Both the position numbers and the translations under genes were made by a program. Positions 1 to 39,300 of a DNA stretch of 64,000 nt are shown here, piece after piece. The stretch's first letter is position 1; each line of letters starts with the position of its first letter. The notes under the pieces were generated by a model, which made no database searches, was not told the origin of the DNA, and saw only the letters and a program-made list of their open reading frames with translations. Origin of the DNA: Azolla caroliniana (lineage: Eukaryota; Plantae; Polypodiophyta); contig JBHGNT010000022.1 in assembly GCA_043228905.1 (NCBI GenBank), forward strand, positions 4,278,001 to 4,342,000, given 5' to 3'.

Positions 1-1370
1 ACTCTACTCGGAAAGTTAATTAGCTCAGTTAGCAGAAAAGCTAATTAGCTTATCAGTTACATTTACCTCAGTTAGCTACTAGGATCGCTACTACATAGGT
101 AACTAGCTACTCTCAATAGTTACTACCATGATAGCTAATTAGCTATTCTCAATAGCTAATTTAGGTACTACCAGATAATTAGCTGTACTGCTAGCTAGTT
201 AGCTATCATGGTAGCTAGTTAGCTATTTCGTTATTACCAGCTAATTAGCTACTAGGAAAGCTAATTAGCTACCATGATAGCTAATTAGCTACTATGATAG
301 CTACTACATAGGTAACTGGCTACTCTCAATAGCTACTACCATGATAGCTAATTAGTTAGGATAGCTAATTAGCCACCATTATAGCTAATTAGCTACTAGA
401 CCAGCTAATTAGCTACCATGATAGCTAATTAGTTACTAGGACAGCTAATTAGCCACCGTGATAGCTAATTAGCTACCATGATAGCTAATTAGCTACTATA
501 CCAGCTAATTAGCTACCATGATAGCTAATTAGTTACTAGGAAAGCTAATCAGCCACCATTATAGCTAATTAGCTACTAGACTAGCTAATTAGCTACCACG
601 ATAGCTAATTAGCTTCTAGACCAGCTAATTAGCTACCATGATAGCTAATTAGTTACTAGGAAAGCTAATTAGCCACCATGATAGCTAATTAGCTAGTAGA
701 CAAGCTAATTAGCCACCATGATAGCTAATTAGCTACTAGGACAACTAATTAGCTACCATGATAGCTAATTAGCTACTACGACAGCTAATTAGCTACCATG
801 ATAGCTAATTAGCTACTAGAATAGCTAATTAGCTACTAGAATAGCTAATTAGCTACCATGATAGCTAATTAGCTACTACGACAGCTAATTAGCTACCATG
901 ATAGCTAATTAGCTACTACGACAGCTAATTAGCTACCATGATAGCTAATTAGCTACTAGAATAGCTAATTAGCTACTAGAATAGCTAATTAGCTACCATG
1001 ATAGCTAATTAGCTACTACGACAGCTAATTAGCTACCATGATAGCTAATTAGCTACTACGACAGCTAATTAGCTACCATGATAGCTAATTAGCTACTAGA
1101 ATAGCTAATTAGCTACCATGATAGCTAATTAGCTACTACGACAGCTAATTAGCTACTACGACAGCTAATTAGCTACCATGATAGCTAATTAGCTACTACG
1201 ACAGCTAATTAGGTACCATGATAGCTAATTAGCTACTAGAATAGCTAATTAGCTACCATGATAGCTAATTAGCTACTAGAATAGCTAACTAGCTACTAGA
1301 ATAGCTAACTAGCTACTAGAATAGCTAATTAGCTACTAGGATAGTTAGCTAGTTACGAGAATAACTAATT
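1..1370. repeat. Tandem array of ~20-bp units built on the palindrome TAGCTAATTAGCTA, inside a transposase intron
   Basis: Units such as ATAGCTAATTAGCTACCATG, ACAGCTAATTAGCTACTACG and ATAGCTAATTAGCTACTAGA. The array ends just before the acceptor TTTATTACGCAG at 1386. Confidence 0.95.
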
Positions 1371-1386
1371 CCCCTTTATTACGCAG

Positions 1387-3228
1387 GTCGATTTATTTAT
1401 TAGGTTCAAACGAATGCATCCAACTATCAAAGTTCAACTACGAACATTCGAGTCTCTTAAGCCACACTTTGTGAGACGCTTAAAGGATCGATACACATGT
1501 TGTTGCATTTACCATGTACAGATGGGTTTTCTGAAGGACTCTGTTAATCTACTACGTCACCATAGCGCATCCCTAACTAATACAGTTTGCACATGTGGGT
1601 GCCAAATCTGTCGATCAAGCCCACAAGAGGAGTGTAAATCATCTGAGCACGTTATCTCTTCCATGAGTTATTTATTAGATTCAATATTGTGTCCGAGAGA
1701 ATCTGACGCTATCTTCCATATTCATAAATGTGTCATGGGTTTATGTCAAGATTGTGGCCCTACTAGATTTAGGTGGTGTCCAAATGAATTGAGTAGTGAA
1801 ATATTGATCTCTGTGAAGTTATTTGAGTCAGTGAACACCAATTTCGAAGGAAAGGTGTGTAAAAGAAAGGATCTAGTTCGGAAGATGCTTAAACCAAGGG
1901 ATTTGGTGTCTCTGTTTGTAGTATCTCTAGGAAAGTTCATTAAACACAACTTCATTTATTCATGGCAGGCCCATCAGTTTAAGACTTGCATATCTGATTT
2001 CCCAAATGATGTAGTAGTCTCAGTAGTAGATTTCGCAGAGAATTATACTTTCAAGCAGCAGAATGAAATTCAATCTATGCATTGGTGTTCAGTTCAGGTA
2101 ACCATTTTTGTGCACATAACATATTTTCGAGTTTCAGGTGATGTTAAAAAAGTAATTCATTTCTTTATTTCCGATGATAAGAAGCATGATACCTTGTTCG
2201 TCCAACACTGTTTTAAGTTACATTGGCAGTGGTTATTAGCTCAACGTTTGGAGCTTACTCAACATTGGGTCTGGTCTGACGGAGCTGCGTCACAATTCAA
2301 GGCTCGACGTCCATTTTATTTTGTGGGGAGGTATCCTGCTATAACAGGTTTGGAGATGAGATGGAATTTTTTTGGGTCTGGCCATGGTAAAGGTGAACAT
2401 GATGGTGCAGGGGCTGTTATAAAGCGGGCACTTACCCATGAACAACTAAAGACAGATGGTGTGCACATGAATTGTGCATCACATGTAGTTGAATTTTTAA
2501 GAACAAATATGTCGACGAGTGCCACAGGTGTTTATTCCTCGCAAGTTCGAGATATCAAACGTGAATTTTGGGAAGTGAAGATAGATGAAGTAAATAGGGA
2601 GAAGACCTGGGAGTGCCAAGGAATTCCCGAATTGCGATCTCTGCATGCTGTTCGCGGTTATTCCAGGTTGGATGGTCATTGTATTGCGGTTAGAGAATTG
2701 ACTTGTTTTTGCTTCCATTGTGTGCAGGGAAATTGGAGATATTGTCTAAACAAAGCATACATTCAGAATTGGGAGTATCACACTCTGAATGATAAGGAAG
2801 CAGTTGATGGAGAAACAGGGCAGAATGCTGACTTCACATATGAGGGACTTGGAGATACTTTGAGTGATGTCCTGAACGTTGGGGATAACTTCGCTGTAAA
2901 TGCTGAAGAAGGCAATTCAGAGGGTGCTGATTTCTATATATTAAAGTGCACGGTTAGTAAACAGTGTGCAAGGCAGAATATTGTAGATGCATGGGGAAAT
3001 TTTGTATCTGCCGAGACATTCTACATCGAAGGCATTTTTTATGCAAAACTAGATGACTACGAATATGTGTACAGGCTGTTAGAAGACAAACCAGCAGCGT
3101 ATATGTACTCTCATTTGGTCAGATGCATCAACGTCCCAATGTCAGAATACAATAGCTGCTCCGGTTTATACACTGTTGGTGCTAATGTGTATGAATGTAT
3201 TTACAATAGTATGCCATGGAATTTGTAG
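1387..3228 (+). CDS. Sola2-like DDD transposase, last exon (intact)
   Basis: Motifs VVDFAENY, WSDGAASQFK and FFGSGHGKGEHDGAG give the three catalytic Asp. Cys clusters TCCCIYH, CTCGCQIC and TCFCFHC..C are present. The frame is open from a splice acceptor at 1387 (VDLFIRFKRMHP), the same intron position as in element 2. Confidence 0.85.
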   Translation, partial: VDLFIRFKRMHPTIKVQLRTFESLKPHFVRRLKDRYTCCCIYHVQMGFLKDSVNLLRHHSASLTNTVCTCGCQICRSSPQEECKSSEHVISSMSYLLDSILCPRESDAIFHIHKCVMGLCQDCGPTRFRWCPNELSSEILISVKLFESVNTNFEGKVCKRKDLVRKMLKPRDLVSLFVVSLGKFIKHNFIYSWQAHQFKTCISDFPNDVVVSVVDFAENYTFKQQNEIQSMHWCSVQVTIFVHITYFRVSGDVKKVIHFFISDDKKHDTLFVQHCFKLHWQWLLAQRLELTQHWVWSDGAASQFKARRPFYFVGRYPAITGLEMRWNFFGSGHGKGEHDGAGAVIKRALTHEQLKTDGVHMNCASHVVEFLRTNMSTSATGVYSSQVRDIKREFWEVKIDEVNREKTWECQGIPELRSLHAVRGYSRLDGHCIAVRELTCFCFHCVQGNWRYCLNKAYIQNWEYHTLNDKEAVDGETGQNADFTYEGLGDTLSDVLNVGDNFAVNAEEGNSEGADFYILKCTVSKQCARQNIVDAWGNFVSAETFYIEGIFYAKLDDYEYVYRLLEDKPAAYMYSHLVRCINVPMSEYNSCSGLYTVGANVYECIYNSMPWNL

Positions 3229-3730: not shown

Positions 3731-3845
3731 AAATAGTCATCAATAGAATGAAATCAACAATCTGCAACATATTCCTCAAATTACATAGTAGATAAGTACA
3801 GTGGGAACAAAATTCTTCATTGAATAATGTCATCTCTTTACATAT

Positions 3846-4900
3846 TTATAAATTACCATTGGAAATGTCTACAAATCTCCTATAAACAGCTAAGCTCTTG
3901 CTAGTCAGTGGAACGAGTCTACATATATTATCCGCATATTGAGCTCGGTATGGAGTCCACAACCATGCACCTAGTTGGCAGCTCACTGTTTGCACCAGGT
4001 ACTGTTCAGGCATTTCCTCGGGTAGAATGAGACAGCATCTCCGAATATTGAAGTAGTGTCGGAAATGTTCTGTATCCAAAATCAATGTATTGTCAGCATT
4101 ATATTCAGGCCAAGTAGCCCAAAAATCGGAAAGCCTCTTGAATCTTGCAGCTTCCATCTGCTCACAATTTTCTCGTGCCCATTGACCTTTAAAACGACTT
4201 CGCCATTTTGGGAAGAATCTTGCCAAACACTTCCACACATCTGATTTTGGTTTCTCACTCCAAATAAACAAATCGAAGTACTCCGCAGCCCACTCTAGAA
4301 ACTGATTTGCGTCCCTCCTTGGCTGCATATATCTCACACTCATCAAGACTTTATCCAGCTCCAAGATCAAGGCTCTTCGCTCGACTTCTAGTGGTTTAGG
4401 TTTCCATTCCTGAAACTGAGCCGCTGTTACACCATTTTCTGGTAGGATACGATCAATCTCAATCAGCTCAGGTTCGGCTGACACAACTGGTGTCCTTTTC
4501 CTCTTTAAACCCCTAGTCGACTGTGTTGGGCCTAGCTTCACATTCTGGTGCTCTTGTTTTGTCGACTTAGTTATCAATCCTTGGATTACCTCAGTGCATG
4601 TAGCTACTGTTCTGCTCGATATCAATCCACTGGTATCACATGCTGCATCTACCTGCAACACCAAGTCATCCGTGCTACATGCTGCATCTACCTGCAACAC
4701 CAAGTCATCCGTGCTACATGCTGCATCTACCTGCAACACCAAGTCATCCGTGCTACATGCTTGATCAACTTGTGTGACCAGATCACTTGTGTCAGTTGCT
4801 ACATCTACTTTCAAGATGGGGCCCTTTAAACATGCCGCAACATCAACAGTATCCACACTGCCATTGGCCTTACGAGCAATAGAATCAAACCCTTTAGACT
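3846..4900 (-). CDS. FCP1/NIF (CTD-phosphatase-like, HAD) domain protein with 13-aa repeats; probable pseudophosphatase
   Basis: The series LILELDKVL..RRDANQFLEW..FDLFIWS..KRLSDFW..YNADNTLILDT matches the order of FCP1/SCP motifs, but DxDxT reads ELDKV. 39-bp repeats (VDAACSTDDLVLQ) lie at ~4600-4810. Likely acceptor TGTTGCAG at 4901. Confidence 0.65.
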
Positions 4901-5149
4901 CTGCAACATCAGAAAACACCAACATATTCACACTCACAAAGTAACTACTAGTCTCACAAAACAATATCCGGAACATCAAAGAGTTTCAGTCATAGAACAA
5001 CACTCTTCAAATTATCTTGGAAAAACATCATAGAGTTCCATTACATAATGTGGATCAAGCAACAACCAATCTGAGGTTTTACTTGTCCAACAGGATAGTA
5101 AAACTTCATAAAACCCTAGCAAAATCCCTAAGCTAACAATCATATCCAA

Positions 5150-8100
5150 CTAAACAGTATTTCGCTCCACTACGTCTGGGCCCCTTGACCGAGTAACTGG
5201 TCTTGTTCCCGATCGTGGCCCCTTCTTCAGCCTTTTTCTGGTTGGTTCCCCATTTAGCCTTGCTTCTAGGACCCAATGCGCAAGTGTGTCCTCCTCCGAC
5301 AACCTTCCCATCGCCTCAGCAGCTAATTGCACATCAGCCGTTTCTTGAACTAGCTTTTCAAGTACAGAGGGATCTGTTTGGACATTTTCAGTAGTTGGGC
5401 TCGGTGGGGTGGAATCAAGGTCTTGAGACTCGAAGAAATGTTGCATCAAGTGTTCATAAACACTGTTGTTGTGAACCTCAGTTTTACATGTTGTTTCCAC
5501 TATTTCATGGCATTTCACATCGTTGCCTAATTCAGTACACTGTTCCAAAAGAATAGGGTGCAGCTGATCTGAAGGAGATGTGATAGCAGGACTCTTACTT
5601 TCAGCCACATTGGCAGTAGTATCCTCATCTGTTGCAGCATCATCAGCACCAGACACATCATGTGCCGTCCTTAATCCACAAGATTCTACAATAACATGAC
5701 AGTTATTTAGGATAGCTAATTAGCTACTTTACTAAACTATGGTAGAAGCTAGGATAGCTAATTAGCTAGTACGATAGCTAATTAGCTAGTATGATAGCTA
5801 ATTAGGTACTTTACTCAACTATGGTAGTAGTTAGGATAGCTTATTAGCTACTTTACACAACTATGGCAGTAGCTACTAGGATAGCTAATTCGCTAGTAGG
5901 ATAGCTAATTAGTTGCCATCAGCTAATTAGCTACTAGGATAGCTAATTAGCTGCCAGTAGCTAATTAGCTACTAGGATACATAATTAGCTGCCAGTAGCT
6001 AATTAGCTACTAGGATAGCTTATTAGCTACTTTACACAACTATGGCAGTAGCTACTAGGATAGCTAATTCGCTAGTAGGATAGCTAATTAGTTGCCATCA
6101 GCTAATTAGCTACTAGGATAGCTAATTAGCTGCCAGTAGCTAATTAGCTACTAGGATACATAATTAGCTGCCAGTAGCTAATTAGCTACTAGGATAGCTT
6201 ATTAGCTACTTTACACAACTATGGCAGTAGCTACTAGGATAGCTAATTCGCTAGTAGGATAGCTAATTAGTTGCCAGCAGCTAATTAGCTACTAGGATAG
6301 CTAATTAGCTACTAGGATAGCTAATTAGTTGCCAGTAGCTAATTAGCTAGTAGGATAGCTAATTAGGTACGTTACTCAACTATGGTAGTAGCTAATTAGC
6401 TAGTAGGATAGCTAATTAGCTACTTTACTCAACTATGGTAGTAGCTAATTAGCTAGTAGGATAGCTAATTAGCTACTAGGATAGCTAATTAGCTGCTAGT
6501 AGCTAATTAGCTACTAGGATAGCTTATTAGCTACTTTACACAACTATGGCAGTAGCTAATTAGTTACTAGGATAGCTAATTAGCTAGTAGGATAGCTTAT
6601 TAGCTACTTTACACAACTATAGTAGTAGCTAGGATAGCTAATTAGCTACTTTCTCAACTATGTAGTAGCTAGGATAGCTTATTAGCTACTAGGACAGCTA
6701 ATTAGCTGCCAGTAGCTAATTAGCTACTAGGATAGCTAATTAGCTACTTTACACAACTATGTCAGTAGCTAATTAGCTACTATGATAGCTAATTAGCTAG
6801 TAGGATAGCTAATTATCTAGTAGGATAGCTAATTAGTTGCCAGTAGCTAATTAGCTAGTAGGATAGCTAATTAGCTTTTTTACACAACTATGGTACTAGC
6901 TAATTAGCTAGTACCATAGCTAACTAGCTACTAGGATAGCTTATTAGCTACTTTACACAACTATGTCAGTAGCTAATTAGCTACTATGATAGCTAATTAG
7001 CTAGTAGGATAGCTAATTAGTTGCCAGTAGCTAATTAGCTAGTAGGATAGCTAATTAGCTTTTTTACACAACTATGGTACTAGCTAATTAGCTAGTACCA
7101 TAGCTAACTAGCTACTAGGATAGCTTATTAGCTACTTTACACAACTATGTCAGTAGCTAATTAGCTACTATGATAGCTAATTAGCTAGTAGGATAGCTAA
7201 TTAGCTAGTAGGATAGCTAATTAGTTGCCAGTAGCTAATTAGCTAGTAGGATAGCTAATTAGCTTTTTTACACAACTATGGTACTAGCTAATTAGCTAGT
7301 ACCATAGCTAACTAGCTACTAGGATAGCTTATTAGCTACTTTACACAAGCTAGTAGGATAGCTAATTAGCTAGTAGGATAGCTAATTAGTTGCCAGTAGC
7401 TAATTAGCTAGTAGGATAGCTAATTAGCTTTTTTACACAACTATGGTACTAGCTAATTAGCTAGTACCATAGCTAACTAGCTACTAAGATAGCTTATTAG
7501 CTACTTTACACAACTATGGCAGTAGCTAATTAGTTACTAGGATAGCTAATTAGTTGCCAGTGGCTAATTAGCTAGTAGGATAGCTATTTAGCTTTTTTAC
7601 ACAACTATGGTACTAGCTAATTAGCTAGTACCATAGCTAATTAGCTACTAGGATAGCTAATTAGCTAGTAGCTCATTAGCTGCCAGTAGCTAATTAGCGA
7701 GTAGGATAGCTAATTAGAAAAGACTAAGCTTATTAGCTACAGTATGGTATACCTGTTTTTTTTCTCCACTCATTTGGTAGAGTTGTACTGCAATCTCCCA
7801 AACAGAATGCAGCAATTCGACAGGCATGTTGAAAACAAAGCAGATGGTATGTGTGGTTGCATGGTTGTAGGTGAACCAACAAAGACGCAGTTTTGTCCTC
7901 CACACCTAATCCGCAAGCGATGCAACGTGCTTGAACTGTCAATAAATCATTTTCTGGTTCTACTTCATTTGGTAAGGGAGCAAGAATGTTCAGGTCCAAA
8001 TCCTGTCTGGTCCTTACCATTCCCTCCACAAAATGTAGCTTCTTCTTAAGGCAGCTAACTACCTGTTCTTGATGAATGTATTGTTCCTTCAACGCAACAG

Positions 8101-9607
8101 AGAAATTTACCGATTAATTATTCTTGTTGTTGAAAGATACACCAACTTTGCTGAGGAATCGTTAACTTACTTGAAGCTTATCCAAATTGTAATCTGCAAC
8201 AGTATTTACACCTAGAAGGTCCAGGTTCATTGAAAGAACCTGGATCTCTATTTGCAGTTCTATTTTACGCTGGGGATCCAGTGGCCCCTCTAATTCAAGC
8301 TCCTGTTGCGCAACCTATTCCAGATAATGCTTGATTAGCACATTTTACCCGTTATTTATAACACAATCACATACCAGCAAAACAATAGTTACCTGAATCT
8401 TATTTCTAATTGTTGTAACAGCAGAAGTAACTTTGCTCTCCATTGCAGAAGCCATTGTGGCTTTCTCTAAATCAGTCTTAAAAAATGCCAATGTCTCACA
8501 GGCTTCATGGACATTTTTTAGCATATAGCTAACCAATGTCTCACCTGTATCATCGACATTGGCTTTCCTTGGGTGTCGGTGTGGTGTATGCCCCCGGTCT
8601 TGCTGGGAGTCGGCAGTTGCATCAACAGCTGCCATGCTCCAAAATCTGTCTATTTTTTGTGCCAAGGTCCCCATCTTTCGGCATCTTTTTACCGATGCCT
8701 CACCATAGACTGCCCAAGCTACCCTATACATTTCAGGGTCTCTAGATTCCTTCGCTGTTTTGCAGTACTCATATGCAAATGCTCTAGCAAATGAAACTGA
8801 CAACTCATTGTTGACTGGGATCTCCTGATGAACTTTCTGGTGCAGTCTCATGCAGTCATCGTACAAGTCGGCTCGTACATGCTTCAGCTTGACCTTGCCT
8901 TTGACTCTAGGCACTGTATATACTGTCATCCAGTCTATATCACTGATCAATTTATCACTTAGGACAGCAGGGTCAACACCCTCGAGTGACAGACCATAGG
9001 TGTTGTGGAAGTCCTCCTTTGTCTCGCAAAATTTTGCGAAGTTTAGCACTCTCGTATACGGAGGAACGAGCCATCTGAAATATCATTTCAGAAATCAGAA
9101 ATAGTGCAAAATCAGAATATGTGAGAATCAAAAACCCCAATCAACAACAACAAAAATGGTGCAAAATCTTTAACTTAACCTAATCAAAATCTGTAATCAG
9201 AAGTTTGAAATCAGAAACCCTAATCAAAATCTGTAATCAGAAGTTTGTAACCAGAAACCTTATTCAGAAATTCTAATCAGAAATTTATAATAAAAAACCC
9301 TAATCAGAAATTTCAATCAGAAACCCTAATAAAAAATTTCAATCACAAACCCTAATCAGAAATCCTAAGCAGAAATTTATAAACAAAAACCCTATTCAGA
9401 AATTCTAATTTGTAATCAAAATTTGTAACCAGAAACCCTATTCAAAAATTCTAATCAGAAATTTATAATCAAAAACCCTAATCAGAAATTTCAATCACAA
9501 ACCCTAATCAGAAATTTCAATCACAAACCCTAATCACTAAAGACAGGATTAAACACAAAAAAAGTAATATAAACACACCTGTTGCTACTCCCCGATTTGC
9601 GAGACAT
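5150..9607 (-). CDS. Spliced accessory gene of element 1: N-terminal helical domain, coiled coil, RING-like finger, acidic/basic tail
   Basis: GT-AG exons join in frame by hand: 9607-9579 (MSRKSGSSN), 9074-8393, ~8314-8171, ~8086-7753 (RCIACGLG..CNHTYHLLC..C..C) and 5685-5150. Phases are compatible at each junction, e.g. ACA G|AA TCT. Confidence 0.7.
5705..7740. repeat. ~2-kb TAGCTAATTAGCTA palindrome array filling the intron after the RING exon
   Basis: Recurrent GGATAGCTAATTAGCTA units with higher-order blocks (TTTACACAACTATGG), bounded by the donor at 7752 and the acceptor at 5686. Confidence 0.95.
9095..9540. repeat. Degenerate AAACCCTAATCAGAAAT repeats in intron 1 of the accessory gene
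   Basis: Repeated AAACCCTAAT/CAGAAATT units with a telobox-like core. Confidence 0.75.
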
Positions 9608-10498
9608 CCTTGTATGGGACTCCAAGGACTTCGCCCTATTCGATTTTGGGGAAATATGAATCGGCACCAAAGTTCAGACAGTAGTCAAAAAGAAAAAACA
9701 AATGTTTGGGGTTTCTGTAACTGAAACATACCTGGACGATGATCGAGCGGGTTCTGTGTTGTAGCTCTCAATCTGCAATGTCGATTTTTTGCTGTTGCGG
9801 GAGCTACGTCTGCGTTCGTGCTCTGAGTACTCCATCTGCGTTCAAAATCAGACTTAGGCTAAACAGGAAATTGATGACATTGAAGTCGACCTTAGATGAT
9901 GGTGATATTCCCCAAGTTCCACTACGTCTGAAACAGAAGTTCAAATATTTGAGTTTTTTCATAAATTAGTTTTTCAAATATTTGATTTTCCCACAAAAAA
10001 GACTAGCTAAACAAATAGCTAATTAGCTATGGCCATTTTAGTAGCTAATTAGCTATAATAGTGTTTCCACTCGCATGCTTTTACCCTTAACTCAAACTCA
10101 ATTTGAAAAACAAAAAAAAAAAGAAAAAGAAAAAGGAAAAGAAAAAAAGAAAAAGAAAAGTCATCATGCAGGGGCGAGGAGCGAACAGGCACTTCGAAAG
10201 GTGTGGTGGGTGGCTAATTAAAGCCTTTAAAAGAAGGCGCACCACGTGTCAACCGACTGCTATATCAGTATAGGATGTGCATGCGCGGGAATCAAGAAAA
10301 GGCGCCACGCATGGAGAAAGAAAACCTCTACCGCGCAGAGTCCCTTCATTTCGCGAACACAGAGATCTCAGCGTTGTCGTGATGTTCTGTGTCCAATGGG
10401 AGAAATTGTGAAATAGTGTGCCTCCACACACATTATACACATTATTATAAATATGAAAATTAGCCTAGGGTCTGATGACATTCAAGTGCATATAGAAA

Positions 10499-24175: not shown

Positions 24176-25239
24176 GGCCAAATCAGAATAGCAAAATTCT
24201 GCTTGAAGTCATCGGGAACCTCTCATGTGGATATTCCGGCTACAACACCTGTCCACCAAGTTCAATCTGCAAAGGTACGGGCCACAATGACTGAAAAGAA
24301 TGAACAGATGATGGCCAGTTGCATAGTATCTATGAGCTCAAGAATACAAGCACTACTTGTTGATTTGGAAGCAGTTAAATCAGCTGAGATACAGGTAGAA
24401 AATAAATTCTCTTCATTAAAGACTACATATGAATGGATTGCATCGACAATCCAAAATTCAGAAAGTGAGGTGTTGAAAGAGGAGTTGAAGAAAGAGCTAA
24501 ACAATATGGGCACTCAATTAGGTTCACAGATGAGAGACCTTGATACTTGTAGGAATGCACATTCCGAAATAGATAATAAGTTGTCAGCTTTAAAGTTGCA
24601 TTCCGAGAACCTTGAGTGCTTGATGCAGGATTTAAAACAAAAAGGTTTTGAAACTTTGTGTCCATCTGTAATTGAGCACCCAAGTGGTATGGAAAGTACC
24701 ATTACTAGTATAGCTATATCACGATATTGGCTTTAAAAGTTATTTATTTCTACTTCTGTGGTATAAATATCATATTAGCTAATATATTATAACTTGTGTT
24801 TGCAATCTGCCAGGTGTATATTTTGTGGCCTCGGATTCAAGCTAGAGGCTATGGATGTTGTGATTACACTGTGCTTGCACACATATCATGTGCTATGTGC
24901 TAAGTATCATTTTGAGAAAGAGAATACATGTATGGACTATAAAACTACAATTGCGGCTGAGCGGTACTATGCTTGGGGTTTAAAAGTACACCCGTACGGT
25001 ATGTGGCTCTACTATTCTATTGTTTGTATTATATGATGTCAATTTACATTTGGATTAGAACTAGTGTATGCCACAATTCATACTTCAAATTTAGGAGAAC
25101 AATGGATTAGTATTCGTGTATCTCTAACAACTAATATGTGGAACCCTAATTATGTGGGTTAGTATTGGCAGTACTCTTAATATATAATTGGTATGTGTAG
25201 TTGAAGGGATATTTTCCAGAATTAGTACTAAAAGGGAAC

Positions 25240-26260
25240 CAGGTACAACATCGTCCAATCTATATTGCAACTTGCCTAGTACTAGTTTAGTAGACACTAT
25301 ACTTGTAGTACATTGTTGATTGTTAGTATTGTTTGTGTAACTTGGGAATTAGTACTAGTTATGTAATTTGGGAACAAGGTGTATAGTAAATTGCTAAATA
25401 TTATTACAGTTTGTGTAATTTGGAAATGAGGTGTGTCAAACACATCTCACGTTTAGTACTAATACTGTTCAAGATTAATATTGTTGGTGTAATTAGTACT
25501 AGTTACGTAATTAGGTGTGTAGAACACATATCACGTTTAGTATTACTTGTGTGCAAAATACCACGTTAGTACTAAAATCCAATCTACATTTGTTGGATTA
25601 GATGTTAGTCCAATCTATATTACAACGTGCCTAGTACTAGTGTTAGTACACACCATACTTGTACATTGTTGACGATTAGTACTTAGCGAGTAGTACATTG
25701 TTCATGATTAGTACTAGTTTTGTAAATTGGGAACTAAGTGAGTAGTACATTGCTCATGATTAGTACTAGTTTTGTAAATTGGGAACTAAGTGAGTAGTAC
25801 ATTGCTCATGATTAGTACTAGTTTTGTAATTTGGGAACTAAGTGAGTAATACATTGTTCAGGATTAGTACTCCTTGTGTAATTTGGGAACTAAGTGAGTA
25901 GTGCATTGTGCATGATTAGTACTACTTGTGTAAATTGGGAACTAAGTGAGCAGTACATTGTTCATTATTAGTACTACTTCTATTCCTTATTAGTACTAGT
26001 TCAGTAATTTAGGAACTAAGTGAATAGTATATTGTTCAGGATTAGATTATTCATGATTAGTACTATTTGTGTAATTTGGCAACTAAGTGAGTGGTACATT
26101 GTTCATGATTAGTACTCCTTGTGTAATTTGACTAAGTTAGTAGTACATTGTTCATGATTAGTACTACTTGTGTAAATTGGGAACTAAGTGAGTAGTACAT
26201 TGTTCACGATTAGTACTAGTTGTGTAATATGGGAAGTAGGTGTAGCTTAATGAATTAGTA
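25240..26260. repeat. ~52-bp tandem repeats with a TTAGTACTA core, in the intron after the RING exon
   Basis: GTAGTACATTGTTCATGATTAGTACTAGTTTTGTAAATTGGGAACTAAGTGA is repeated from ~25690. Confidence 0.9.
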
Positions 26261-28674: not shown

Positions 28675-28889
28675 TTAGTACTAAACTAATATGTATATTG
28701 ATACTTGTGTTAGTACTAATATGTATATTGATACTTGCGTTAGTACTAATATGTATATTGATACTTGCGTTAGTACTAATATGTATATTGATACTTGCGT
28801 TAGTACTAATATGTATATTGATACTTGTGTTAGTACTAATATGTATATTGATACTTGCGTTAGTACTAATATGTATATTGATACTTGCG
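28675..28889. repeat. 30-bp tandem repeat, ~7 copies, containing the palindrome TTAGTACTAA
   Basis: TTAGTACTAATATGTATATTGATACTTG(C/T)G units lie between the convergent genes. Confidence 0.95.
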
Positions 28890-30219
28890 AAGTATGGTCT
28901 CCTTGAGTGCACATGGTTAGAGTTGAATAATGACTTGAGTGCACACAATAGAGACTTGATAGTTGAGTAAGTTTGGGCCATATTTAGGCTACTAAATATT
29001 CAAAACTTCACACCTTAAACCATAGAAACAAGCAACTCTATAATTACCATAAACACTGACAATACAGAAGTATTGAAGACTTCACACCTTAAACCATGGA
29101 AACAAGCAACTCTATAATTACCATAAACACTTACAATACAAAATAGTCTCAATACATCAAATATATCGATTCATAATACATAATAGAAGAAAGAGGAATT
29201 ATATCGATTCATTTGTCAATCATCAAAATTAATATATCAATACATCAAATAGTGAACTACAAATGGATGTTTTTTAGTTTTCTGGTACAATGTATTGATA
29301 GGGTGACTTTCAAGCATTAAATAGAGAGACCTCCCCTAATATGTGCTCATGAACCTCTTGGGGGACCTTGTAGACAGTGTTGTATCCCTTAACCTTGTGC
29401 TTTGCTTGAGTCATATTGAATTTGATCGCAAGAATGGCATCAACGTAGATTATTGTGATCGGTGCTTCTTTTAGTAATGCATATGTGTTCTTGCACTGCG
29501 ACAACTTTGCATAATAGTTTCCATACACGACAGACTCACCAAGGTTGAAATTGTTGCCCCAACCATCCCTCACCACTTCTTTCAATAATGTCTTGCCTTG
29601 CTTGCACACCACAATGTATTAGTCTTCTAAATCTTCATTCTGAGGAGATTTGAGCACTGCAATATGATCTCCAACTTCCAATAAAACTGCCAAGTCTTGA
29701 TGTTGGTTGTAGTATATAATATCGTTTGAATGCGCATCCTCTTCAATATCATCTTGTCGTTCAGGCTCAAGCTTCTACAACTTCCAGGGCTCGACGATTG
29801 ATAGGTTGATGCATTTATCCCAAGCTTCATCTATACACATGGAACAAAAGCATGATAAAGTACGAAGTAACAATTGTGTTGTGTCCTTGCGGCTAAACCC
29901 TAATACACAATGGGTATTGCGTGTGCCTTTCACGGTTTTACAACCATATGATTTAGTTCTCTCAACCTCATCAACGCGAACTTCAACAAACAATCTGTTC
30001 TTACCATCATTTGACATCTTCCATGTTAGCCACTGCACAACATCATGTGCATTTTGTAACTTAGCACCATTATTATCCAACTGCTCACTTGTAAGGGCAC
30101 GTTTGATCACAACCCCCGCGCCATCATGCTCTCCTTTTCCATGTCCAGACCCGAAGTAGTTCCATTGCATACGAATGTTGAATAAGGAGAAATACCTGCT
30201 TTTGTATCTCAGGTTTCCA

Positions 30220-33200
30220 ACAAAATTAGTACTATCTTGTCAATCGAGAGTACTACACATCCATTAATACTGATTTAGTACAAATACAAAACAAAGCATA
30301 GCACAACGTATCCATTGAGAACACTCTACACTTATTAAAAGATAAATAGTACTATGTTGTCAACCATGTGAACTTGGCATCCATTAATACTAATTTAGTA
30401 TGGATACAACACAAAGCATAGTACAATGAATTCATGGAAAACACTCTACATGAATTAACAGATAAATAGTACAAACTCTTCAATATCAGATAGTACTATG
30501 TTGTTGACGACGAGTACTTTACATTCATTAATACTGATTTAGTACAGATACAATACACAATACAGTACAATGTGTCCACGGAGAACACAACCCTCCTTAG
30601 AAGATAATTAGTACTACAACACATGTACTTTACATCCCCCAATAAACACTGATTTAGTATAGATACAACACATAGTACAATACAGTGTGCATGGAGAACA
30701 CTCAGCATGGATTAATAGATAAGTAGTACGAACTCTTCAATATAAGACAATACTATGAGTACAAGACATGTACTTTACATCTTCCGATAATTACTGATTT
30801 AGTATAGATACAACACCAAGTACAATACAGTGTGTTCATGGAGAACATTCAACATTGATTAATAGATAATTAATACAAACTCTTCAATCTAGGATAGTAC
30901 TATGAGTAAAAGACATGTACTTTACATCCTTCGATAATTACTTCTTTAGTACAGATACAACACATAGTACAATACAGTGTCCATGGAAAACCCTCAACAT
31001 GGATTAAAAGATAATTAGTACAATTCTCTTAAGTGTCAAGATTTGAACTCTTGACATGACCATGTTATAAATCGAGTGTTATGTGTTAACCACACATCTA
31101 GCATATAATCATGTATATACTTCCTCATTGAGGTTTTAGCTAGCATCATGTGCATAATTTCTCCCTTGTATTATTTACACTTGGCACATGCATGCGTACC
31201 TACTGGCTACATGCTCTATTGTATCACATGCGTGCAGCAGGTATGCATGCCACTTAGTATAAATAGTTGAGTTCACCTTGAAAGAATTCAAGGTGAACAA
31301 CGCCAGTCATGGACATATCAATCTAGTATCCCATTTCACCCGTCCTCTCTCCTTGATCTTCATCTCTATCTTTATGCTCTTGTTCCTCGTGTCATCACTC
31401 CGTCATAGCCTCATCATCCGTGCTCTGTCTTAGTCCGCGCTTGGTGTGTCCATGACAGTTTGTTCACCTTCCAACTAGAAGCATCACCCGTCTCCGTCAT
31501 TGCCCTTGCTTCTAGAGTTACCATAGTCACCGTACCATCATCAACATCGCTTCATTTCCTATCTTCCTCGCCATTTCTATCTCCTAGTTTCTTCTCATCA
31601 TTTTCATTGGCTTTTAGTTTCTCCTCATCATTGTCTCTATTTTTTAGTTTCTTTCCCGTTTGTGTTCGTGTTCTAGTTCCCGGTGAGGGCCGCACAAGGC
31701 CGCTCACTCCCGTTGGTGTTCGTGTTCCAGTTCCCGGCGAGGTCCGCACAAGGCCTCTCACTCCCATTGGTGTTCGTGTTACAATTCCTGGTGAGGGCCG
31801 CATGGTCGCTCACACTCGTTCATGTTCCTAATCCCGGTGAGGGCCGCACATGGCCGTTCACTCTCGTTCATGTTCATGTTCCTAGTGAGGGCGGCATGGT
31901 CGCTCAATCCCATTCGTGTTCCAATCTCCGGTGACAACCGCACATGGTTGCTTACTCCAACTATTGTTCGTGTTCTAGATCCCGGTGAGGACCGACATGG
32001 TCACTCATGCCCGTTGTTGTTCATGTTCCAGTTCCCGGTGAGGACCACACATGGTCGATTACTCCCGTTCGTGTTCCTGTTCCCGGTGAGGGCCACATGG
32101 TCGCTCACTCGTTCGTGTTCCATTTCTCGGTGAGGACAACATGGTTGCTCATGCTCGTTGGTGTTCGTGTTCCAACTCTCAGCGAGGACCGTTCCAGTTC
32201 CCGGCAAGGACCCCACATGGTCACTCATGCCCCTTGGTGTTCATGCTCCCCGTGAGGACCGCACATGGTCGCTCACACCCGTTCATATTTGTGTTCTAGT
32301 CCTAGGCGAGGACCACACATGGTCGCTCATGCCCGTTGGTGTTAAATACCTCATCTTGTGGAAGGGTTACTCCTTGTCTAGGATTTACAAAATACTTTGG
32401 AGGTGATCTAAGACATTCATCAACAATATCCCCTTAAGCCGACAAACAATTTGGGAAGGCATCGTTGGAGGGGGGATAATGTCAAGATTCAAACTCTTGA
32501 CATGACCATGTTATAAATCGAGTGTTATGTGTTAACCACACATCTAGCATATAATCATGTATATACTTCCTCATTGAGGTTTTAGCTAGCATCATGTGCA
32601 TAATTTCTCCCTTGATTTACACTTGGCACATGCATGCGTACCTACTGGCTACATGCTCTATTGTATCACATGCATGCGTACCTACTGGCTACATGCTCTA
32701 TTGTATCACATGCGTGCAGCAGGTATGCATGCCACTTAGTATAAATAGTTGAGTTCACCTTGAAGGAATTCAAGGTGAACAACGCCAATCATGGACATAT
32801 CAATCTAGTATTCCCATTTCGCCCATCCTCTCTCCTTGATCTTCATCTCTATCTTTATGCTCTTGTTCCTCGTGTCATCGCTCCGTCATAGCCTCATCAT
32901 CCGTGCTCTGTCTTAGTCCGCGCTTGGTGTGTCCATGACATTAAGGACGGTCAATACTATGAGTACAAGTTGAGTAAATACTGATTTAGTACAGATACAA
33001 CACACAACATAGTACAATGTGTCTATGAAGAACACTTCATATGGATTAGAAGATGATTAGTACAATTCTCTTAAGGACAGACAATACTATGAATACAAGA
33101 CGAGTACTTTACATCCTTCAGTAAATATTGATTTAGTACAAATAGAACATACAACATAGTACAATGTGTCTATGGAGAACACTTCACATGGATTAAAAGA

Positions 33201-33740
33201 TAATTAGTACAATTCTCTTAAGGATGGACAATACTATGAGTACAAGACGAGTACTTTACATCCTTCTGTAAACACAACATAGTACAGATACAACACACAA
33301 CATAGTACAATGTATCTATGGAGAACACTTCACATGGATTAAAGATAATTAGTACATTTCTCTTAAGGACGGACAATACTATAGAGTACAATACGAGTAC
33401 TTTACATTCTTCAGTAAATACTGATTTAGTAAAGATACAACACACAACATAGTACACTTTGTCTATGGAGAACACTTCACATGGATTAAAAGATAATAAA
33501 CACAGATTCACGTGACAACATAGTACTATTTGATCAATCAAGAATAGTTAACTTAGTTACAAACAAAATTAGTATGCATGCATCCATGTGAATAGTGTTG
33601 TGTTCGAATAGTTACAAACATAATTAGTATGCATCCATGTGAATAGTATTGTGTCTAAATAGTTACAAACATAATTAGTATGCATGCACTAACACAAGAA
33701 TTACTTCCTTACACATTGCATGATAAGTACTAAACATATG
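30220..33740. repeat. Degenerate ~120-bp AGTAC-rich tandem repeats in the large transposase intron
   Basis: Recurring ACTGATTTAGTACAGATACAACAC..GGAGAACACT..ATAATTAGTAC, interrupted by an LTR element. Confidence 0.8.
31034..32940 (+). mobile_element. Non-autonomous LTR element (TRIM/LARD-like, 1.9 kb)
   Basis: LTRs 31034-31457 and 32480-32940 (TG..CA); TSD TTAAG; PPT GGAGGGGGGATAA. Internal ~50-bp repeats and a chromodomain-like remnant VKYLILWKGY. Confidence 0.88.
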
Positions 33741-35529
33741 GATTAAAAATTACCTGGCGATAAAGTAGAACGATTGTGCTGCCTTAAACTGCGAGGTAGC
33801 ACCATCAGACCAAACCCAATGATGGTTAAAGGTTAACCCTAGAGACAATAAATTTGCATGGTGAAGCTTAAAACAATGTCGAACAAATAGTGTATCATGC
33901 TTTTTATCATCTGAAATGTAAAATAATGATTTCTTATGTAACTCACCGTCTTGCCTCCAATAGCAAATATGTACAAGTATTGTACATTGATCATTGTACC
34001 AATGCATTGATTGAACCTCATTTTGAACTTTAAATGTATAATTTTCTGCAAAGTCAATAACGGATACGATTACACCCGTTGGTAAGTTATTAATACATTC
34101 CTTGAACTGTGAATTTTGCCAATAACTCCGGAAGTTATGTGGAATGAACTCCCCAAGTTGTTTCTTAAATTCTGAGACAAGGGTAGCAACACATGTCTCC
34201 TTATATACTTCCTTGATATGCTTAGTTACAAGTCCCTTGCCAATATTTTCAGTCACATACTCTAAATATTTCCATTTCACAATATGACTGTTTTCCAAAT
34301 CAAGCTCCTGCCTACAAAATAATGGTAGCGGACAAACCTTACATGTTCTTAATAGACATGTACGACGATGCCACTCACATGATGGTTCATAGCTCAAAAA
34401 CGGATGCATAAGTCATGTTTCGTGCATTACACCTATTATCCTCCCCATTTGGTCTACAAACCTCACAAGTGCAGACACATAATTCCCCGTGTATACCCTT
34501 AGAATCAATACGCATTGCATTCACTCCTAGCCTTAACATGTCCATCTTCATGTGGTACACACAACAACATGTATTCCTCTCATTTAATTTTCTAATATAA
34601 AACGGTTTCACACCTTGGAACTTGTGGAATCCAACAGTCAAGCTTGGATTTTGGTCTTTAAAGTTCATGTACAATTCAGCCTACATCAACCAATATATAT
34701 AGTAAACATTAATATACACTTGGTCAAAACACAAATTTATGGAATGTGAATTGATATAAAAAAATGGAATACCTCTGTCATCTCCAAGAAGTGTCTAGGG
34801 TGAATCTGGTACTTACCCTGACTTATTCGTTGTCTACACACGTCCTTCTTATTTGGTGAGACACGCGTATTTTTGGCCCAAAATGAATCCACTTTCTCAA
34901 TAATCTCTTGAGATAAGGCATCACATTGTCGTTTTCGTCCCAACCCCAACCACTTGAATTGGCTTGAGTGTATATTTCGGCGATGTTTCCTCAAGTTCCT
35001 TCTTTGAATACCCAGGGCTAAGGCAACTTTAGTATCACTATATTTTTTTTCTCTCGCACCATTCACAACCATGTGTAGGGCTGCCCTCTTTGCAGCAAGT
35101 TTGTCTATGCTCTCTACACCTTTCACTAAGTCTAGGGATGACTTCATAGACTCTACAATCTCTTCTGAAACACATTGGTCCCTAAATTTTATTCTCTCCA
35201 TGTCTTCATTCAAACGTTGATGGTGTAACACTCTACATATAATATCCCTATGATCCTCTTCACTAAATCTCTTCGTTATTTCTACCAAATAACGGACTAT
35301 GTGAAGAACCACCCGTCTCTTGGTCCTTTCAGATATACATGAGTTACTTGACAACTCACTCTCGTTGGGGACCCCCATTTGGTCACTAGATTTATCCAAA
35401 AAAAGTAAGTGTCCGGTGAGAGTAGTTAATGTGATATAGACTACACTAAGAAAACACAGTCAACTGTTTTTAAATGTGGCCTGCAAAGTGAGAAATAATT
35501 CGTTTCGAACATTAGAATTACGAATCAAA

Positions 35530-36345
35530 TATGACAATTGTAAAATCTAAAAATTTAGTACTGAAAAATGAAGAAATGAAAAAATTTAGTCCTCAAAATA
35601 AAAAAATGGATGGAAGGAACCTCCAATGGTGGCGGGAGCGTTGATTTAGTGTGATATGCCACCTCGATTTGCTGGAAGGAACCTCCAATGGTGGAGGCAC
35701 GACGTACAAATTTGACAATTGTAAAATCTAAAAATTTAGTCCTGAAAAATGAAGAAATGAAAAATTTTAGTCTTGAAAATAAAAAAATGGATGGAAGGAA
35801 CCTCCAATGATGGCGGGAGCATTGATTCAATGTGATATGCCACCTCGATTTGCTGGAAGGAACCTCCAATGGTGGAGGCACGACTTACAAATTTGACAAT
35901 TGTAAAATCTAAAAATTTAGTACTGAAAAATGAAGAAATGAAAAATTTTAGTCTTGAAAATAAAAAATTGGATGGAAGGAACCTCCAATGGTGGCGGGAG
36001 CGTTGATTCAGTGTGATATGCCACCTCGATTTGCTGGAAGGAACCTCCAATGGTGGAGGCACGACGTACAAATTTGACAATTGTAAAATCTAAAAATTTA
36101 GTACTGAAAAATGAAGAAATGAAAAATTTTAGTCTTGAAAATAAAAAATTGGATGGAAGGAACCTCCAATGGTGGCGGGAGCGTTGATTCTGTGTGATAT
36201 GCCACCTCGATTTGCTGGATTGAACCTCCAATGGTGGAGGGCGCCTTGAATCTTTGTGATATGCCGCCTTGATTTAGTGGAAGGAACCTCCAATGGTGGA
36301 GGGCGCCTTGAATCTTTGTGATATGCCGCCTGGATTCGGTGGAAG
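35530..36345. repeat. ~181-bp tandem repeat (~4 copies) plus ~58-bp subunits upstream of the transposase CDS
   Basis: TGACAATTGTAAAATCTAAAAATTTAGT recurs at ~35532, 35713, 35893 and 36074; GGAAGGAACCTCCAATGGTGG subunits. Confidence 0.9.
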
Positions 36346-39300
36346 GATCCTCGCCTCGATGGAAAAAGCCCCAAATCACCACAACATAAACTGCAATCGA
36401 TGGAAGTAAGAAAGTCGTTGTCGAAGAAGTCACTATTGGCTGTTATAAGAGGCCTCAGAACAGTCTTTGTTCCTCAACCTAAACCCTAACAAAAACAGAA
36501 ACCCTAAAAAAACCAGAAATCCTCAACTCAAAAGCTCCAACTTGACATGGATGTCTGAGATTTGCTCCCTAAACCCTAACAAAACTCTTAGATTGGAGGA
36601 AAAGCAGAAACGTGACATGGATGTATGAGATGAAGAGCTCAGAGGGATAGAGGAAGAGGAGTATGAGGGGAACCGCCAAAATTGACGTGAGGGGAAAATA
36701 GCCCCCAAAATGGAAAGAACATCTCCTCACATGTTCCCCCCACTCCTTGTAGTAAATGACACTTGTACTACAGTCACCGCACTCTCCAAAATCGATTTTT
36801 TTTTTCTCTGATTTTTTTTCTGAATTATTCAATACTAACAGTATCAAAAGTACTGACAATTTTTGTGGCCAAAAACAGTACTTTTCTGGTACACCGTAGC
36901 GTGCTTCCACCCGGAATCGCTTCGTATGTAGAGGGAATTGTTCGATTTTGACATACGGAAGCCGATTTGATGAAGATATTGCGTTATCTTCGAATGCCAA
37001 GTACGCATTGCCTGCTTGAGGCTGTAGAGTGGCTTCTTGAGTCGGCATACAACTTTTAGATGGGTGCTCAAGTTAAAGCTGGGTGGTTGTATCATGTGCA
37101 CCTCCTCTTCTAATAAGCTTTGTAGAAAGGCATTCTTGACGTCCATTTGATGGAGGTGCCACCCTTTCGCCGCGGCAAGCGCAATTACGGTCCGTACCGT
37201 CGTCATCTTTGCCACCGGGGCAAAGGTCTCTTTGTAGTCGACGCCATGTGTCTGAGCGTATCCTTTCGCTACAAGTCGAGCTTTGTAGCGGTTTATGGAA
37301 CCATCGGCGTTATACTTCACCTTGTAGATCCATCTGCACCTGATCGCCTTCTTGTGCGGTGAGTGGGGAACGAGATCCCATGTCTCGTTCTTGCGTAATG
37401 CACGCATCTCCTCGTTCATTGCTTCGATCCATCTTGGGTCCTTCACGGCTGCAGAAAAGGTTTCTGACTCCCGTACTGTTGCTACCTTCATCATAAAGGC
37501 GTAATGGTACGCCATATAATCGTTGTAGCCGAATCGGCTTATGCGGTTCTTTTCACGAGTGGATCGGCGGAGCTTTTCATTTGCAGAGATGAGGGCTTTC
37601 TTAGCTCCGATTGGTACATCGAAGCCACCGAACTCACTGTCGAGTGAGGGAGTCGACTCATCGTCGTCGAAGCGATCATCTTCGTATTCCGCTATTTTTT
37701 CCTTGCCTTTGTCCAACTTCGGGCTAGGCCATGATGTGCTTTGATCGCTCAAAGGCTCTGGTGGTCTGCTCAGTCAGGTCGTGATCGGACTTTCTTCGAA
37801 TATGCGCGTAAGGAGATCTTCATCCTCTATCTCATGTTCAGCGGATTCCGGGTCGAGTGGAGTTGGAGTCGAAGTTGTCTCTGGTGCGTACCAAGATGCG
37901 GACTTGTCAAAAACGACGTCTCGACTTACTCGAGATTTTCGAGTTGAGGGGTTGTAGCATTTGTACCCCTTTTGGTCCAATCATATGAGTATCCTACAAG
38001 GATACATCTCTCCAACTTCGGGTCAAGCTTTTGATGCTTCTTGTTGGGGATGTGCACGTACGCTATCGCGCCGAATATCCGGATGTGCGATAAGTCTGGC
38101 TTCTTTCCGAAGTATTTTTCATGCGGAGTGACCTCGTGCACGCCGGATGTTGTGCACCGGTTCATTAGGTAGATGGCCGTATTTGCAGCTTCGGCCCAAT
38201 ATGACTTGGGCATATGCTTCTCGTTCATCATAGCCCGCGCTACTTCGAGGATGTGCCGATTTTTGTGCTCAGCTACTCCATTTTGTTGCAGAGTGTGTCA
38301 ACAAGTGAATTCTCGCTGAATTCCTTCCTTTCAGAGATACGCCGTGAAATCGTCCGAGAAGTACTCCTTGCCGCCATCCGGTCGAAGACATCTTACATGT
38401 CGGCCCGTGGCTTTCTCGACTTCATTCTTGAAATTTTGGAAGTGTCCAAACACTTTGCTCTTTTGCCGCATCGGGTAGATCCAAGTGTGCCTAGAGAAGT
38501 CGTCGATGAAGAGCACGTAATATCGGCATCCGCCGAATGTAGCCATTTGCACCGGTCCCCATACGTCGGAATGGACTACATTGAGTAGACCTTTGCTTAC
38601 GTTCCACTCTTTCGGGAATGGCTGTCGGTGTTGCTTGCCGAATTGGCACGCTTCGCATACATCTTCAATCTCCTTCTCTTTGAATGTCGGGAGTCCGATG
38701 ACGACTCCTTTCGATTTCATTGCTTTGAGTTTGTTGAGATTGATGTGGCCGATTCCCTTGTGCCATAGCTCTATGTCGGAGTCGGCTTCCGTGCTTTTTG
38801 CGAACATGGCGGATTTCATCTCGTGTGAATCGAGAATGAACATCCAGCCCTCTCTTCTTCCGCGCGCGATGATTCAGACCTCTTTTTCGATGAAGCACCC
38901 TTCTTGGTCAAATCGTACTTGTATCCCTTGCTCAACCATTTGGCTAACCGAGACCAAATTCTTCGTGATGGTGGGAACATGCAAGACATTTTTAATGTAT
39001 GTTTGCTTACCTCTTTCGCCGAACAGAACATTGCCGATGTGCCGAATCGGTTGCGTAGTGTCATCTCTGGTTTTGACATAACCGGGTCACTCTGACTCTC
39101 GAAGTTCAAGAAATCATTCTTTATGAGATATCATATGGTTTGAGGCTCTGGAGTCAAGAAACCATACGTCCTCCGGATTGAGGGCACTAGTTGAGGTAGA
39201 GGCACGGTCGGAGTTGTGTGCATACATTCCGCCACGATCTTCGTAGTCGGAGTTGTGCCCATACATTCCGCTATACTCTTCATAGTTGGAATTGTGAGCG

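Follow-up and report, generated by a model that had tools for sequence, protein, structure and literature searches.

The 64,000-nt window analyzed here, from contig JBHGNT010000022.1 of the fern Azolla caroliniana, contains two large transposons: element 1 at 1-10072, whose left part lies outside the window, and element 2 at 21683-36912. Both combine a transposase gene, an accessory gene that encodes a RING-like finger and lies tail to tail with the transposase, and non-coding arrays of a short palindrome. The anatomy and boundaries of these two-gene elements can be read directly from the window, and the existence of a Sola2-like, two-gene land-plant lineage with a selected accessory gene is well supported by related loci. 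The open reading frames (ORFs) of element 1 are intact, and element 2 is decayed. Element 1 has the following features.

1..1350, no strand: array 1 of AGCTAATTAGCT, with a 20-bp period and a 40-bp higher-order unit, upstream of the transposase ORF and continuing past the window start.
1414..3228, plus strand: transposase, an intact 604-aa ORF with a Cys/His-rich region and a DDD core (DFAENY, WSDG, GHGKGEHDG).
3643-3722, no strand: short palindrome run that follows a 233-bp tandem duplication.
3846..4979, minus strand: NIF block, similar to FCP/SCP phosphatases of the C-terminal domain (CTD) (Pfam NIF E 1.1e-7, 32.1 bits against a cut-off of 21.8).
5150..5656, minus strand: acidic-then-basic ORF between array 2 and the NIF block, a candidate exon of the RING gene.
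5700..7717, no strand: array 2, with about 64 CTAATTAG cores, immediately behind the RING exon.
7756..8086, minus strand: RING-H2-like exon, C-x2-C ... C-x-H-x2-H-x2-C ... C-x3-C, borders predicted; hidden Markov model (HMM) E 4.6e-13 for coiled coil plus RING.
8173..8314, minus strand: coiled-coil exon, 5' border supported by a relative's contigs, 3' GTAAGT donor predicted.
8315..8392, minus strand: accessory-gene intron of 78 nt, GT..AG, missing from the relative's contigs in three runs.
8393..9074, minus strand: N-domain exon encoding an orphan helical domain (HMM E 7.9e-53).
9075..9578, minus strand: 5' intron of the accessory gene; the relative's contigs jump at 9077 to sequence matching 9579 onwards.
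9579..9607, minus strand: first coding exon of the accessory gene, ATG at 9607, encoding MSRKSGSSN, then RW... in the next exon.
10017..10072, no strand: right end, with AGCTAATTAGCT at 10017-10028 and 10044-10055 and the terminus ...GTGTTTCCACTC.

The features of element 2, which include terminal inverted repeats (TIRs), target-site duplications (TSDs) and an exon with a helix-turn-helix (HTH), are listed below.

21683..21708, plus strand: left TIR, starting with GGGTCGAAGCATGCTACGGTGTACCA; TSD GGAA at 21679-21682 and a subterminal TAGTACTA at 21726.
24164-24733, plus strand: coiled-coil ORF of the accessory gene (24164..25033).
24779-25033, plus strand: RING exon, a weak match to the family profile (E 1e-3).
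25223..26242, no strand: array of TAGTACTA in 52-bp units after the RING exon.
26262..28073, plus strand: downstream ORF blocks on the accessory strand, with a basic tail preceded by acidic repeats of 84 bp.
28676..28889, no strand: intergenic array of TAGTACTA in 30-bp units, between the convergent genes.
29340..35399, minus strand: transposase pseudogene, homologous to the element 1 transposase.
29340-30194, minus strand: last transposase exon, with homology to element 1.
About 30195-33752, minus strand: transposase intron of 3.5 kb, GT..AG and phase-consistent, containing motif copies and other repeats.
33753-34388 and 34438-34680, minus strand: transposase core blocks, with homology to element 1.
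34737-35399, minus strand: first transposase exon, a 220-aa ORF with the HTH.
36887..36912, minus strand: right TIR, an inverted copy of the left end; TSD GGAA at 36913-36916.

Element 2 is a complete insertion of 15,230 bp (21683-36912) with TIRs of 26 bp, 24 of whose 26 bases agree between the inverted ends. It interrupts a Copia reverse transcriptase, whose RVT_2 domain (Pfam) is represented by profile positions 1-158 within 36844-37752(-) and by 161-242 within 21370-21783(-). Because the flanking ORFs are the two halves of one Copia reverse transcriptase, the boundaries of the element and its 4-bp TSD are exact, and the insertion is younger than the Copia copy it interrupts. The empty site of element 2 can be reconstructed exactly from the split gene. 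Element 1 ends on the right at 10072; its left end precedes the window start, so only a part of it is visible. Thus, the extents given in the sequence-only reading of this stretch hold for element 2 and for the end of element 1, but not for the start of the latter. The termini had been called related, and they are: GAGTGGAAACAC of element 1 and GGGTGGAAGCAC of element 2 share 10 of 12 bases. All of these ends have the GRG form, with GAGTGG in element 1, GGGTCG and GGGTGG in element 2, and GGGTAT in a related locus, L001, which has a 22-bp TIR starting with GGG and flanks (TCCA and TTCA) that differ by one mismatch.

The transposases of the two elements are homologous DDD enzymes, as had been claimed, with 35-50% identity and the DFAENY, SDG and HGKGEHDG motifs in both. 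D206, D289 and D330 do not vary among 20 aligned homologues taken from plants, molluscs and other organisms. More distant homologues were found in Adiantum, the moss Ceratodon, the liverwort Calypogeia, conifers, Klebsormidium, molluscs and a sea cucumber. ORFs lying upstream, or N-termini, from L001, L009, L010, Ceratodon and Calypogeia can be aligned with the first-exon ORF of element 2 (34737-35399), and an HTH-like LGIxRRN segment and an ETRVSPNKKDV block are common to these first exons, Calypogeia excepted. Pfam matches include HTH_23 in homologue P0285 (E 7.8e-6) and a weak HTH_8 in L001 and L009. In element 1, the N-terminal HTH exon is expected before the window start, as in relatives. 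The element 1 transposase is 97% identical to protein P0001, which belongs to a cluster of 34 sequences; given such near-identical relatives and the intact ORFs, element 1 may be recently active. The reading frame of the element 2 copy shifts near 34395 and is interrupted by stops at 29775-29777 and 29619-29621; this copy is therefore dead.

Several tandem repeats accompany the transposase genes. The 233-bp duplication of element 1 (3194-3663, copies 99% alike) begins in the last codons of the transposase ORF. In the transposase intron of element 2, two arrays of 147-bp units flank a GC-rich array with a 54-bp period (30615-31023, 31654-32173 and 32973-33497); possible explanations of this cluster are a nested element and a composite satellite. 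Between the first transposase exon of element 2 and its right end lie four 181-bp units, 96% alike (35526-36240), followed by 62-bp repeats (36149-36352).

The accessory gene is convergent with the transposase in both elements. Its exons were searched and folded one by one and joined only for the reading frame. Homology between the two accessory genes is measurable in the RING exon alone, where 7742-7933(-) of element 1 and 24806-24997(+) of element 2 are 36% identical over 67 aa (E 4e-6) and contain RCIACGLG...CNHTYHLLC and RCIFCGLG...CLHTYHVLC, respectively. The coiled coil and the acidic-then-basic tails are alike between the elements by composition alone. The family profile detects no N-domain in element 2. 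At the place where the N-domain exon is expected, a 231-aa ORF occupies the opposite strand (23068-23763(-)); it has no Pfam match, and its Cys/His motif is reminiscent of the C-terminal part of ORF2 proteins of retrotransposons lacking long terminal repeats (non-LTR). This ORF may be a nested insertion that destroyed the N-domain of element 2. The common plan of transposase, convergent RING gene and palindrome arrays described in the sequence-only reading is thus present in both elements; the homology it had drawn between the accessory genes is confirmed for the RING exon and its quoted motifs, but in the coiled coil and tails it is reduced to a likeness of composition. The decay of element 2, including its frameshift, two stops and undetectable N-domain, had been overlooked, as had the phosphatase-like NIF block of element 1.

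Splicing of the accessory gene is indicated by contigs of a relative, obtained in three runs from one organism and about 95% identical to element 1; their RNA origin is a guess, and no run catalogued as RNA contains the stretch. They lack exactly 8315-8392, and the absence of this canonical GT..AG intron from the contigs means that the accessory gene is spliced there. The second intron (9075-9578) is probably removed in the same contigs as well. Because they jump from 9077 to 9579, the start codon was placed at 9607. The resulting predicted N-terminus, MS..RW..PPY, resembles the N-termini of relatives. A 13-bp repeat similar to CTAATCAGAAATT, different from the palindrome arrays, occurs in about 27 copies within the 5' intron (9179-9536). 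A GT donor follows the RING exon of element 1 at about 7755, and a GTAAGT donor follows the RING domain in L008, a genomic contig 89% identical to L001; because of these two donors, the array behind the RING exon is probably intronic.

A complete version of the accessory gene is provided by L001, in which a single 551-aa ORF convergent with the transposase encodes a basic N-terminal part and a conserved domain (about 145 aa), along with a long coiled coil and a RING finger of the pattern C-x2-C ... C-x-H-x2-H-x2-C ... C-x4-C. The gene is convergent with the transposase in seven of the 11 related loci examined, among them L001, L009, L010, L012 (Adiantum nelumboides), L003 (Ceratodon purpureus) and L005 (Calypogeia fissa), and is thus conserved across ferns, a moss and a liverwort. 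Accessory blocks are also present in L004, where the stretch fetched has no transposase. No accessory gene was found within 10 kb at the Cryptomeria locus (L006), a mollusc locus (L007) or L011, and L002 ends directly after its transposase. The N-domain family has 170 representatives at E ≤1e-3.

The accessory gene is under purifying selection in two independent pairs. The ratio of nonsynonymous to synonymous substitution rates (dN/dS) is 0.29 over the stretch from the N-domain to the RING finger of L001 and L008, and pN/pS is 0.29 for the N-domain exon of element 1 and the relative's contig. The pairwise identities of the transposase and the accessory protein correlate (r 0.83 for 15 non-independent pairs), and both proteins yield the same groups, one containing element 1, L001 and L009, and another containing L010 and Ceratodon. 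This correlated divergence with the same groupings points to long co-inheritance and argues against repeated capture. Among fern families the accessory protein evolves faster, with an identity of 28-34% as against 50-55% for the transposase. The conservation and selection of the RING gene, proposed earlier as a check, are thus borne out by its presence in seven of 11 loci, a ratio of about 0.29 in both pairs, and divergence together with the transposase.

Further ORFs related to this gene are found at two loci. In L010, 5783-7498 and 10045-11616 on the minus strand are two diverged accessory paralogues, 18% identical over the profile, and a separate ORF with a C3HC4-type RING lies between them (8548-9090). 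A similar extra RING-like ORF is present in Ceratodon L003 at 20939-21730.

The palindromes differ from family to family. In the window, AGCTAATTAGCT occurs in 97 copies and its CTAATTAG core in 123, in element 1 alone, and TAGTACTA occurs in 31 copies, in element 2 alone; neither is found in the other 38.7 kb. Copies of AGCTAATTAGCT include two at most 56 bp from the terminus of element 1. Besides its two arrays, element 2 has TAGTACTA copies in the transposase intron, and AGTACT copies near both ends. A third palindrome, GGTAGCTACC, characterizes a family comprising L001 (34 copies), L002 (16) and Adiantum (13-15, with a GTAGCTAC core); its copies precede the transposase core ORF, come immediately behind the RING exon, and lie near the TIRs of L001. 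In L009, GCACTTWAGTGC is present in seven copies, compared with 0.6 expected by chance, and only upstream of the transposase ORF. Thus, four fern families have four palindromes, in all cases clustered upstream of the transposase core ORF and in three of the four also after the RING exon; in the families of element 1, element 2 and L001, subterminal copies adjoin the TIRs. No such arrays were seen at the Ceratodon, Calypogeia and L010 loci. The family-specific arrays are real and so far a fern feature. The earlier claim that the two elements contain different palindromes is upheld, each palindrome being confined to its own element, and related families have their own palindromes at equivalent positions.

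Two properties of the element 1 arrays can be added. The CTAATTAG core that fills 1-1350 and 5700-7717 coincides with the classic TAATTA homeodomain-type site. The palindromes stand 20 bp apart, about two helical turns, a spacing that would place all sites on one face of the DNA.

The NIF block lies on the RING strand downstream of the RING exon in element 1 as well as in L001, L009 and Adiantum, and PF03031 is recorded for the products of the latter three. A profile of the block matches the phosphatase UBLCP1 (3shq) at E 0.003, and a single-sequence search against Protein Data Bank (PDB) sequences gave nothing relevant. The catalytic DxDxT motif is not kept: element 1 has ExDxV there, and L001 and Adiantum have DxNxV; the block is therefore probably not an active phosphatase, and probably serves as a pseudophosphatase or a binding module. 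No NIF block was found in element 2, the moss, the liverwort or L010. Since NIF is confined to fern families, at least this block was acquired later.

Several structural comparisons bear on the accessory protein. The AlphaFold model of the L001 protein is of high confidence, with a pLDDT >90 in the N-domain, after which come a long hairpin of helices and a small finger. Foldseek matches of the whole model are dominated by coiled coils. The finger has weak matches (all E >0.3) to the RING domains of RNF12, HRD1 and RNF13, with a TM of 0.55-0.74 by target. In the family, the conserved pattern is C-x2-C ... C-x-H-x2-H-x2-C ... C-x3-4-C, in which the last pair is not C-x2-C, and the finger of element 2 is without the final Cys. 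The N-domain folded alone (pLDDT 87) has no match in PDB (Foldseek E >2; VIA Z ≤3.0). When compared with ESM Atlas, its model resembles plant clusters with plant mobile domain (PMD), Transposase_32 or ATHILA ORF1 domains at a TM of 0.51-0.59. None of 15 N-domains and 53 family members has a Pfam match to PMD (PF10536 or related), and language-model features give no support for this connection. The modeled resemblance to PMD is therefore treated as a lead only. Apart from the weak RING matches and NIF, the accessory protein matched no Pfam family, and no homology to VANC, the accessory protein of Arabidopsis VANDAL elements, was found.

The Sola2 superfamily of DDD cut-and-paste transposons was reportedly described by Bao et al. 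in 2009. As the sequence-only reading had proposed, the elements fit Sola2 for each feature tested, that is, DDD motifs, the 4-bp TSD (GGAA, in element 2) and GRG termini. The reference comparison consisted of motif blocks read by eye in two published transposases, Sola2_DFa-2 and Sola2_PPa-1, which contain DFKEN, WSDGAKHFK and YHGKSxxD (PMC3627910 supplements); the printed Sola2_DFa-2 sequence begins with GAGCAT, and 4-bp TSDs are known for amoebozoan Sola2 elements (PMC3627910). Pfam is without any Sola model (PMC5751038). Transposase homologues were found in bivalves, as are reported Sola2 elements (PMC10294476). The transposase profile search reached molluscs and echinoderms, and no dictyostelid protein was among its best 120 matches.

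The proposed plant lineage is substantiated by ferns, a moss and a liverwort, with a transposase homologue in Klebsormidium. The statement that Sola2 elements encode the transposase only proved incorrect, since a Sola2 with a second gene was already known: a Fanzor1 gene accompanies the transposase in elements of 10-15 kb from the amoebozoans Dictyostelium fasciculatum and Polysphondylium pallidum (PMC3627910). Nor is the lineage fully undescribed, as 'Sola' is already a fern repeat class, with 2,739 pieces in the Ceratopteris repeat table (PMC6890710), the one line of which is the sole plant Sola mention that we found in the searchable literature. What does stand of the claim of novelty is that the searchable literature, Repbase apart, contains no description of the RING and NIF accessory gene, its conservation in land plants, or the palindrome arrays.

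On balance, we consider the following scenario probable: a Sola2-like two-gene lineage, a transposase that is the putative binder of the palindromes, and an accessory protein that acts on a host factor. The elements would form one land-plant lineage of large Sola2-like cut-and-paste transposons with an ancestral unit of two convergent genes. The first gene would encode a transposase composed of an N-terminal HTH exon, a Cys/His-rich region and a DDD core with an RNase-H-like fold. The second would join a RING-H2-like finger and a long coiled coil to an orphan, helical N-domain; in fern families the NIF block comes in addition, its catalysis probably lost. The family palindromes would be putative binding sites for an element-encoded dimeric protein, most likely the transposase, and slippage or unequal exchange would have multiplied them to give phased intronic arrays. 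The accessory protein would act by protein contacts, as a coiled-coil dimer with an E3-ligase-type activity and a pseudophosphatase docking module, rather than as a DNA reader, and its target may be a host factor limiting transposition or expression. Binding of the palindromes by a transposase dimer is favored because motif copies lie within about 60 bp of the readable ends, because the transposase has an HTH exon, and because arrays and the accessory N-domain do not always co-occur.

A number of observations weigh against this scenario. The grouping with Sola2 is one by motifs, TSD and termini. The LGIxRRN HTH segment is nearly the same in three fern families with different palindromes, and therefore the HTH may not set specificity. 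About 100 internal intronic sites exceed what a transposase needs, and the accessory protein evolves faster than the transposase, as would a specificity factor. The match to zf-RING_2 (E 4e-4, 21 bits) is under the Pfam cut-off of 27.3, and the last Cys pair is oddly spaced. Finally, the N-domain is PMD-like at a TM of 0.51-0.59; since PMD-C proteins reportedly occupy specific DNA motifs (bioRxiv 10.1101/2024.09.27.615353), the reader could instead be the accessory protein. Gene models in Adiantum that fuse the N-domain, RING and NIF blocks were rejected as evidence that RING and NIF belong to a single transcript, because these models span 41-46 kb and are chimeric.

The most serious alternative, possible by analogy but doubtful in our opinion, is that the accessory protein recognizes the palindromes of its own family and protects the family from silencing, as VANC does, via a ubiquitin-ligase or phosphatase-like module. 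The motifs are family-specific, tandem and non-coding, like the targets of VANC (PMC5735166); one array always follows the RING exon; and the low identity of the accessory protein (28-34% as against 50-55%) is expected of a specificity factor. The N-domain model has the above similarity to PMD, Transposase_32 and ATHILA ORF1 models, and PMD-C proteins are found in association with particular DNA motifs and have a phosphatase as partner (bioRxiv 10.1101/2024.09.27.615353; PMC7156037). However, neither Pfam nor language-model features connect the N-domain with PMD, no VANC homology was found, and the motifs are also located beside the TIRs, where transposases bind. The link between the accessory protein and a target motif that the sequence-only reading had proposed finds nothing to tie the two together, the N-domain having no recognizable DNA-binding fold. 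The pairing is not constant: the moss, the liverwort and L010 keep the gene without arrays, and element 2 has arrays without an N-domain. A more specific version, which we judge unlikely, makes the accessory protein an anti-silencing factor of a new type, whose PMD-like N-domain would read the arrays of its own family, and whose coiled coil, RING finger and pseudophosphatase would remove a host silencing or transcription factor there, or disable it.

Quite unlikely is the possibility that the arrays are functionless, neutral satellite-like expansions of a short subterminal repeat tolerated by large introns. A variable copy number (seven in L009, 31 in element 2, 123 in element 1) and period, other unrelated tandem repeats in the same elements, and the lack of arrays in bryophyte relatives agree with neutrality, but in independent families arrays of the family's own motif have been kept at two shared positions, and in element 1 perfect 12-bp palindromes are held at a 20-bp phase. 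It is very improbable that the RING/NIF gene is a captured host passenger (Pack-type cargo) with no role for the element: the presence of NIF in fern families only, so that at least NIF was acquired later, would suit such an origin, but the gene is conserved in position and orientation across ferns, a moss and a liverwort, has a dN/dS of about 0.29, diverges together with the transposase and keeps its own introns.

The favored scenario, with a transposase as the binder and a second protein acting on a host factor, has partial parallels in known systems. En/Spm (TnpA and TnpD) and PIF/Harbinger elements require a second protein in addition to the transposase and bear repeats of a short binding motif close to either end. 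They belong to other superfamilies and have other accessory domains than the elements described here, and to our knowledge long internal intronic palindrome arrays are not a described feature of En/Spm or PIF/Harbinger. The closest likeness is to Sola2, including Sola2-Fanzor1 (PMC3627910), with the DFxEN, SDG and HGKxxxD motifs, a 4-bp TSD, short GRG TIRs, a length of 10-15 kb and a second gene. In contrast to Sola2-Fanzor1, the second gene here encodes an orphan N-domain, a coiled coil and a RING finger (with NIF in ferns) rather than Fanzor1, the hosts are plants, the accessory gene is conserved across land-plant lineages, and ferns have palindrome arrays. Arabidopsis VANDAL elements with VANC (PMC5735166, PMC10398659) likewise combine an element-encoded accessory protein with short family-specific tandem motifs in non-coding DNA, a likeness at the level of sequence; however, VANDALs are Mutator-like, with an unrelated transposase superfamily, there is no similarity to VANC here, and the motifs here are palindromes that also occur beside the TIRs. 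The association of a transposon-related helical domain with a phosphatase-type module resembles MAIN/MAIL1 with PP7L and the PMD-PP7 fusion MAIL3 (PMC7156037; bioRxiv 10.1101/2024.09.27.615353), but in our case the module is HAD/NIF rather than PPP, a RING finger is present, and sequence comparison gives no connection to PMD.

Few cut-and-paste transposons have been studied as little as Sola2 elements. A second gene under selection from bryophytes to ferns would mean that this lineage needs more than a transposase, and the RING finger and CTD-phosphatase-like block point to manipulation of host proteins. The palindrome arrays provide a defined DNA target that could show either family recognition by a DDD transposase or escape from silencing in very large fern genomes. 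If the anti-silencing explanation were true, plants would have a second, independently evolved arms-race system of a protein and its target motif, one predating the divergence of ferns and bryophytes.

One more homologue deserves mention. Protein P0281 from Klebsormidium nitens (1180 aa) is 39% identical to the transposase and is also annotated with leucine-rich-repeat Pfam domains; the explanation is either a fusion of gene models or domestication of the copy in this streptophyte alga.

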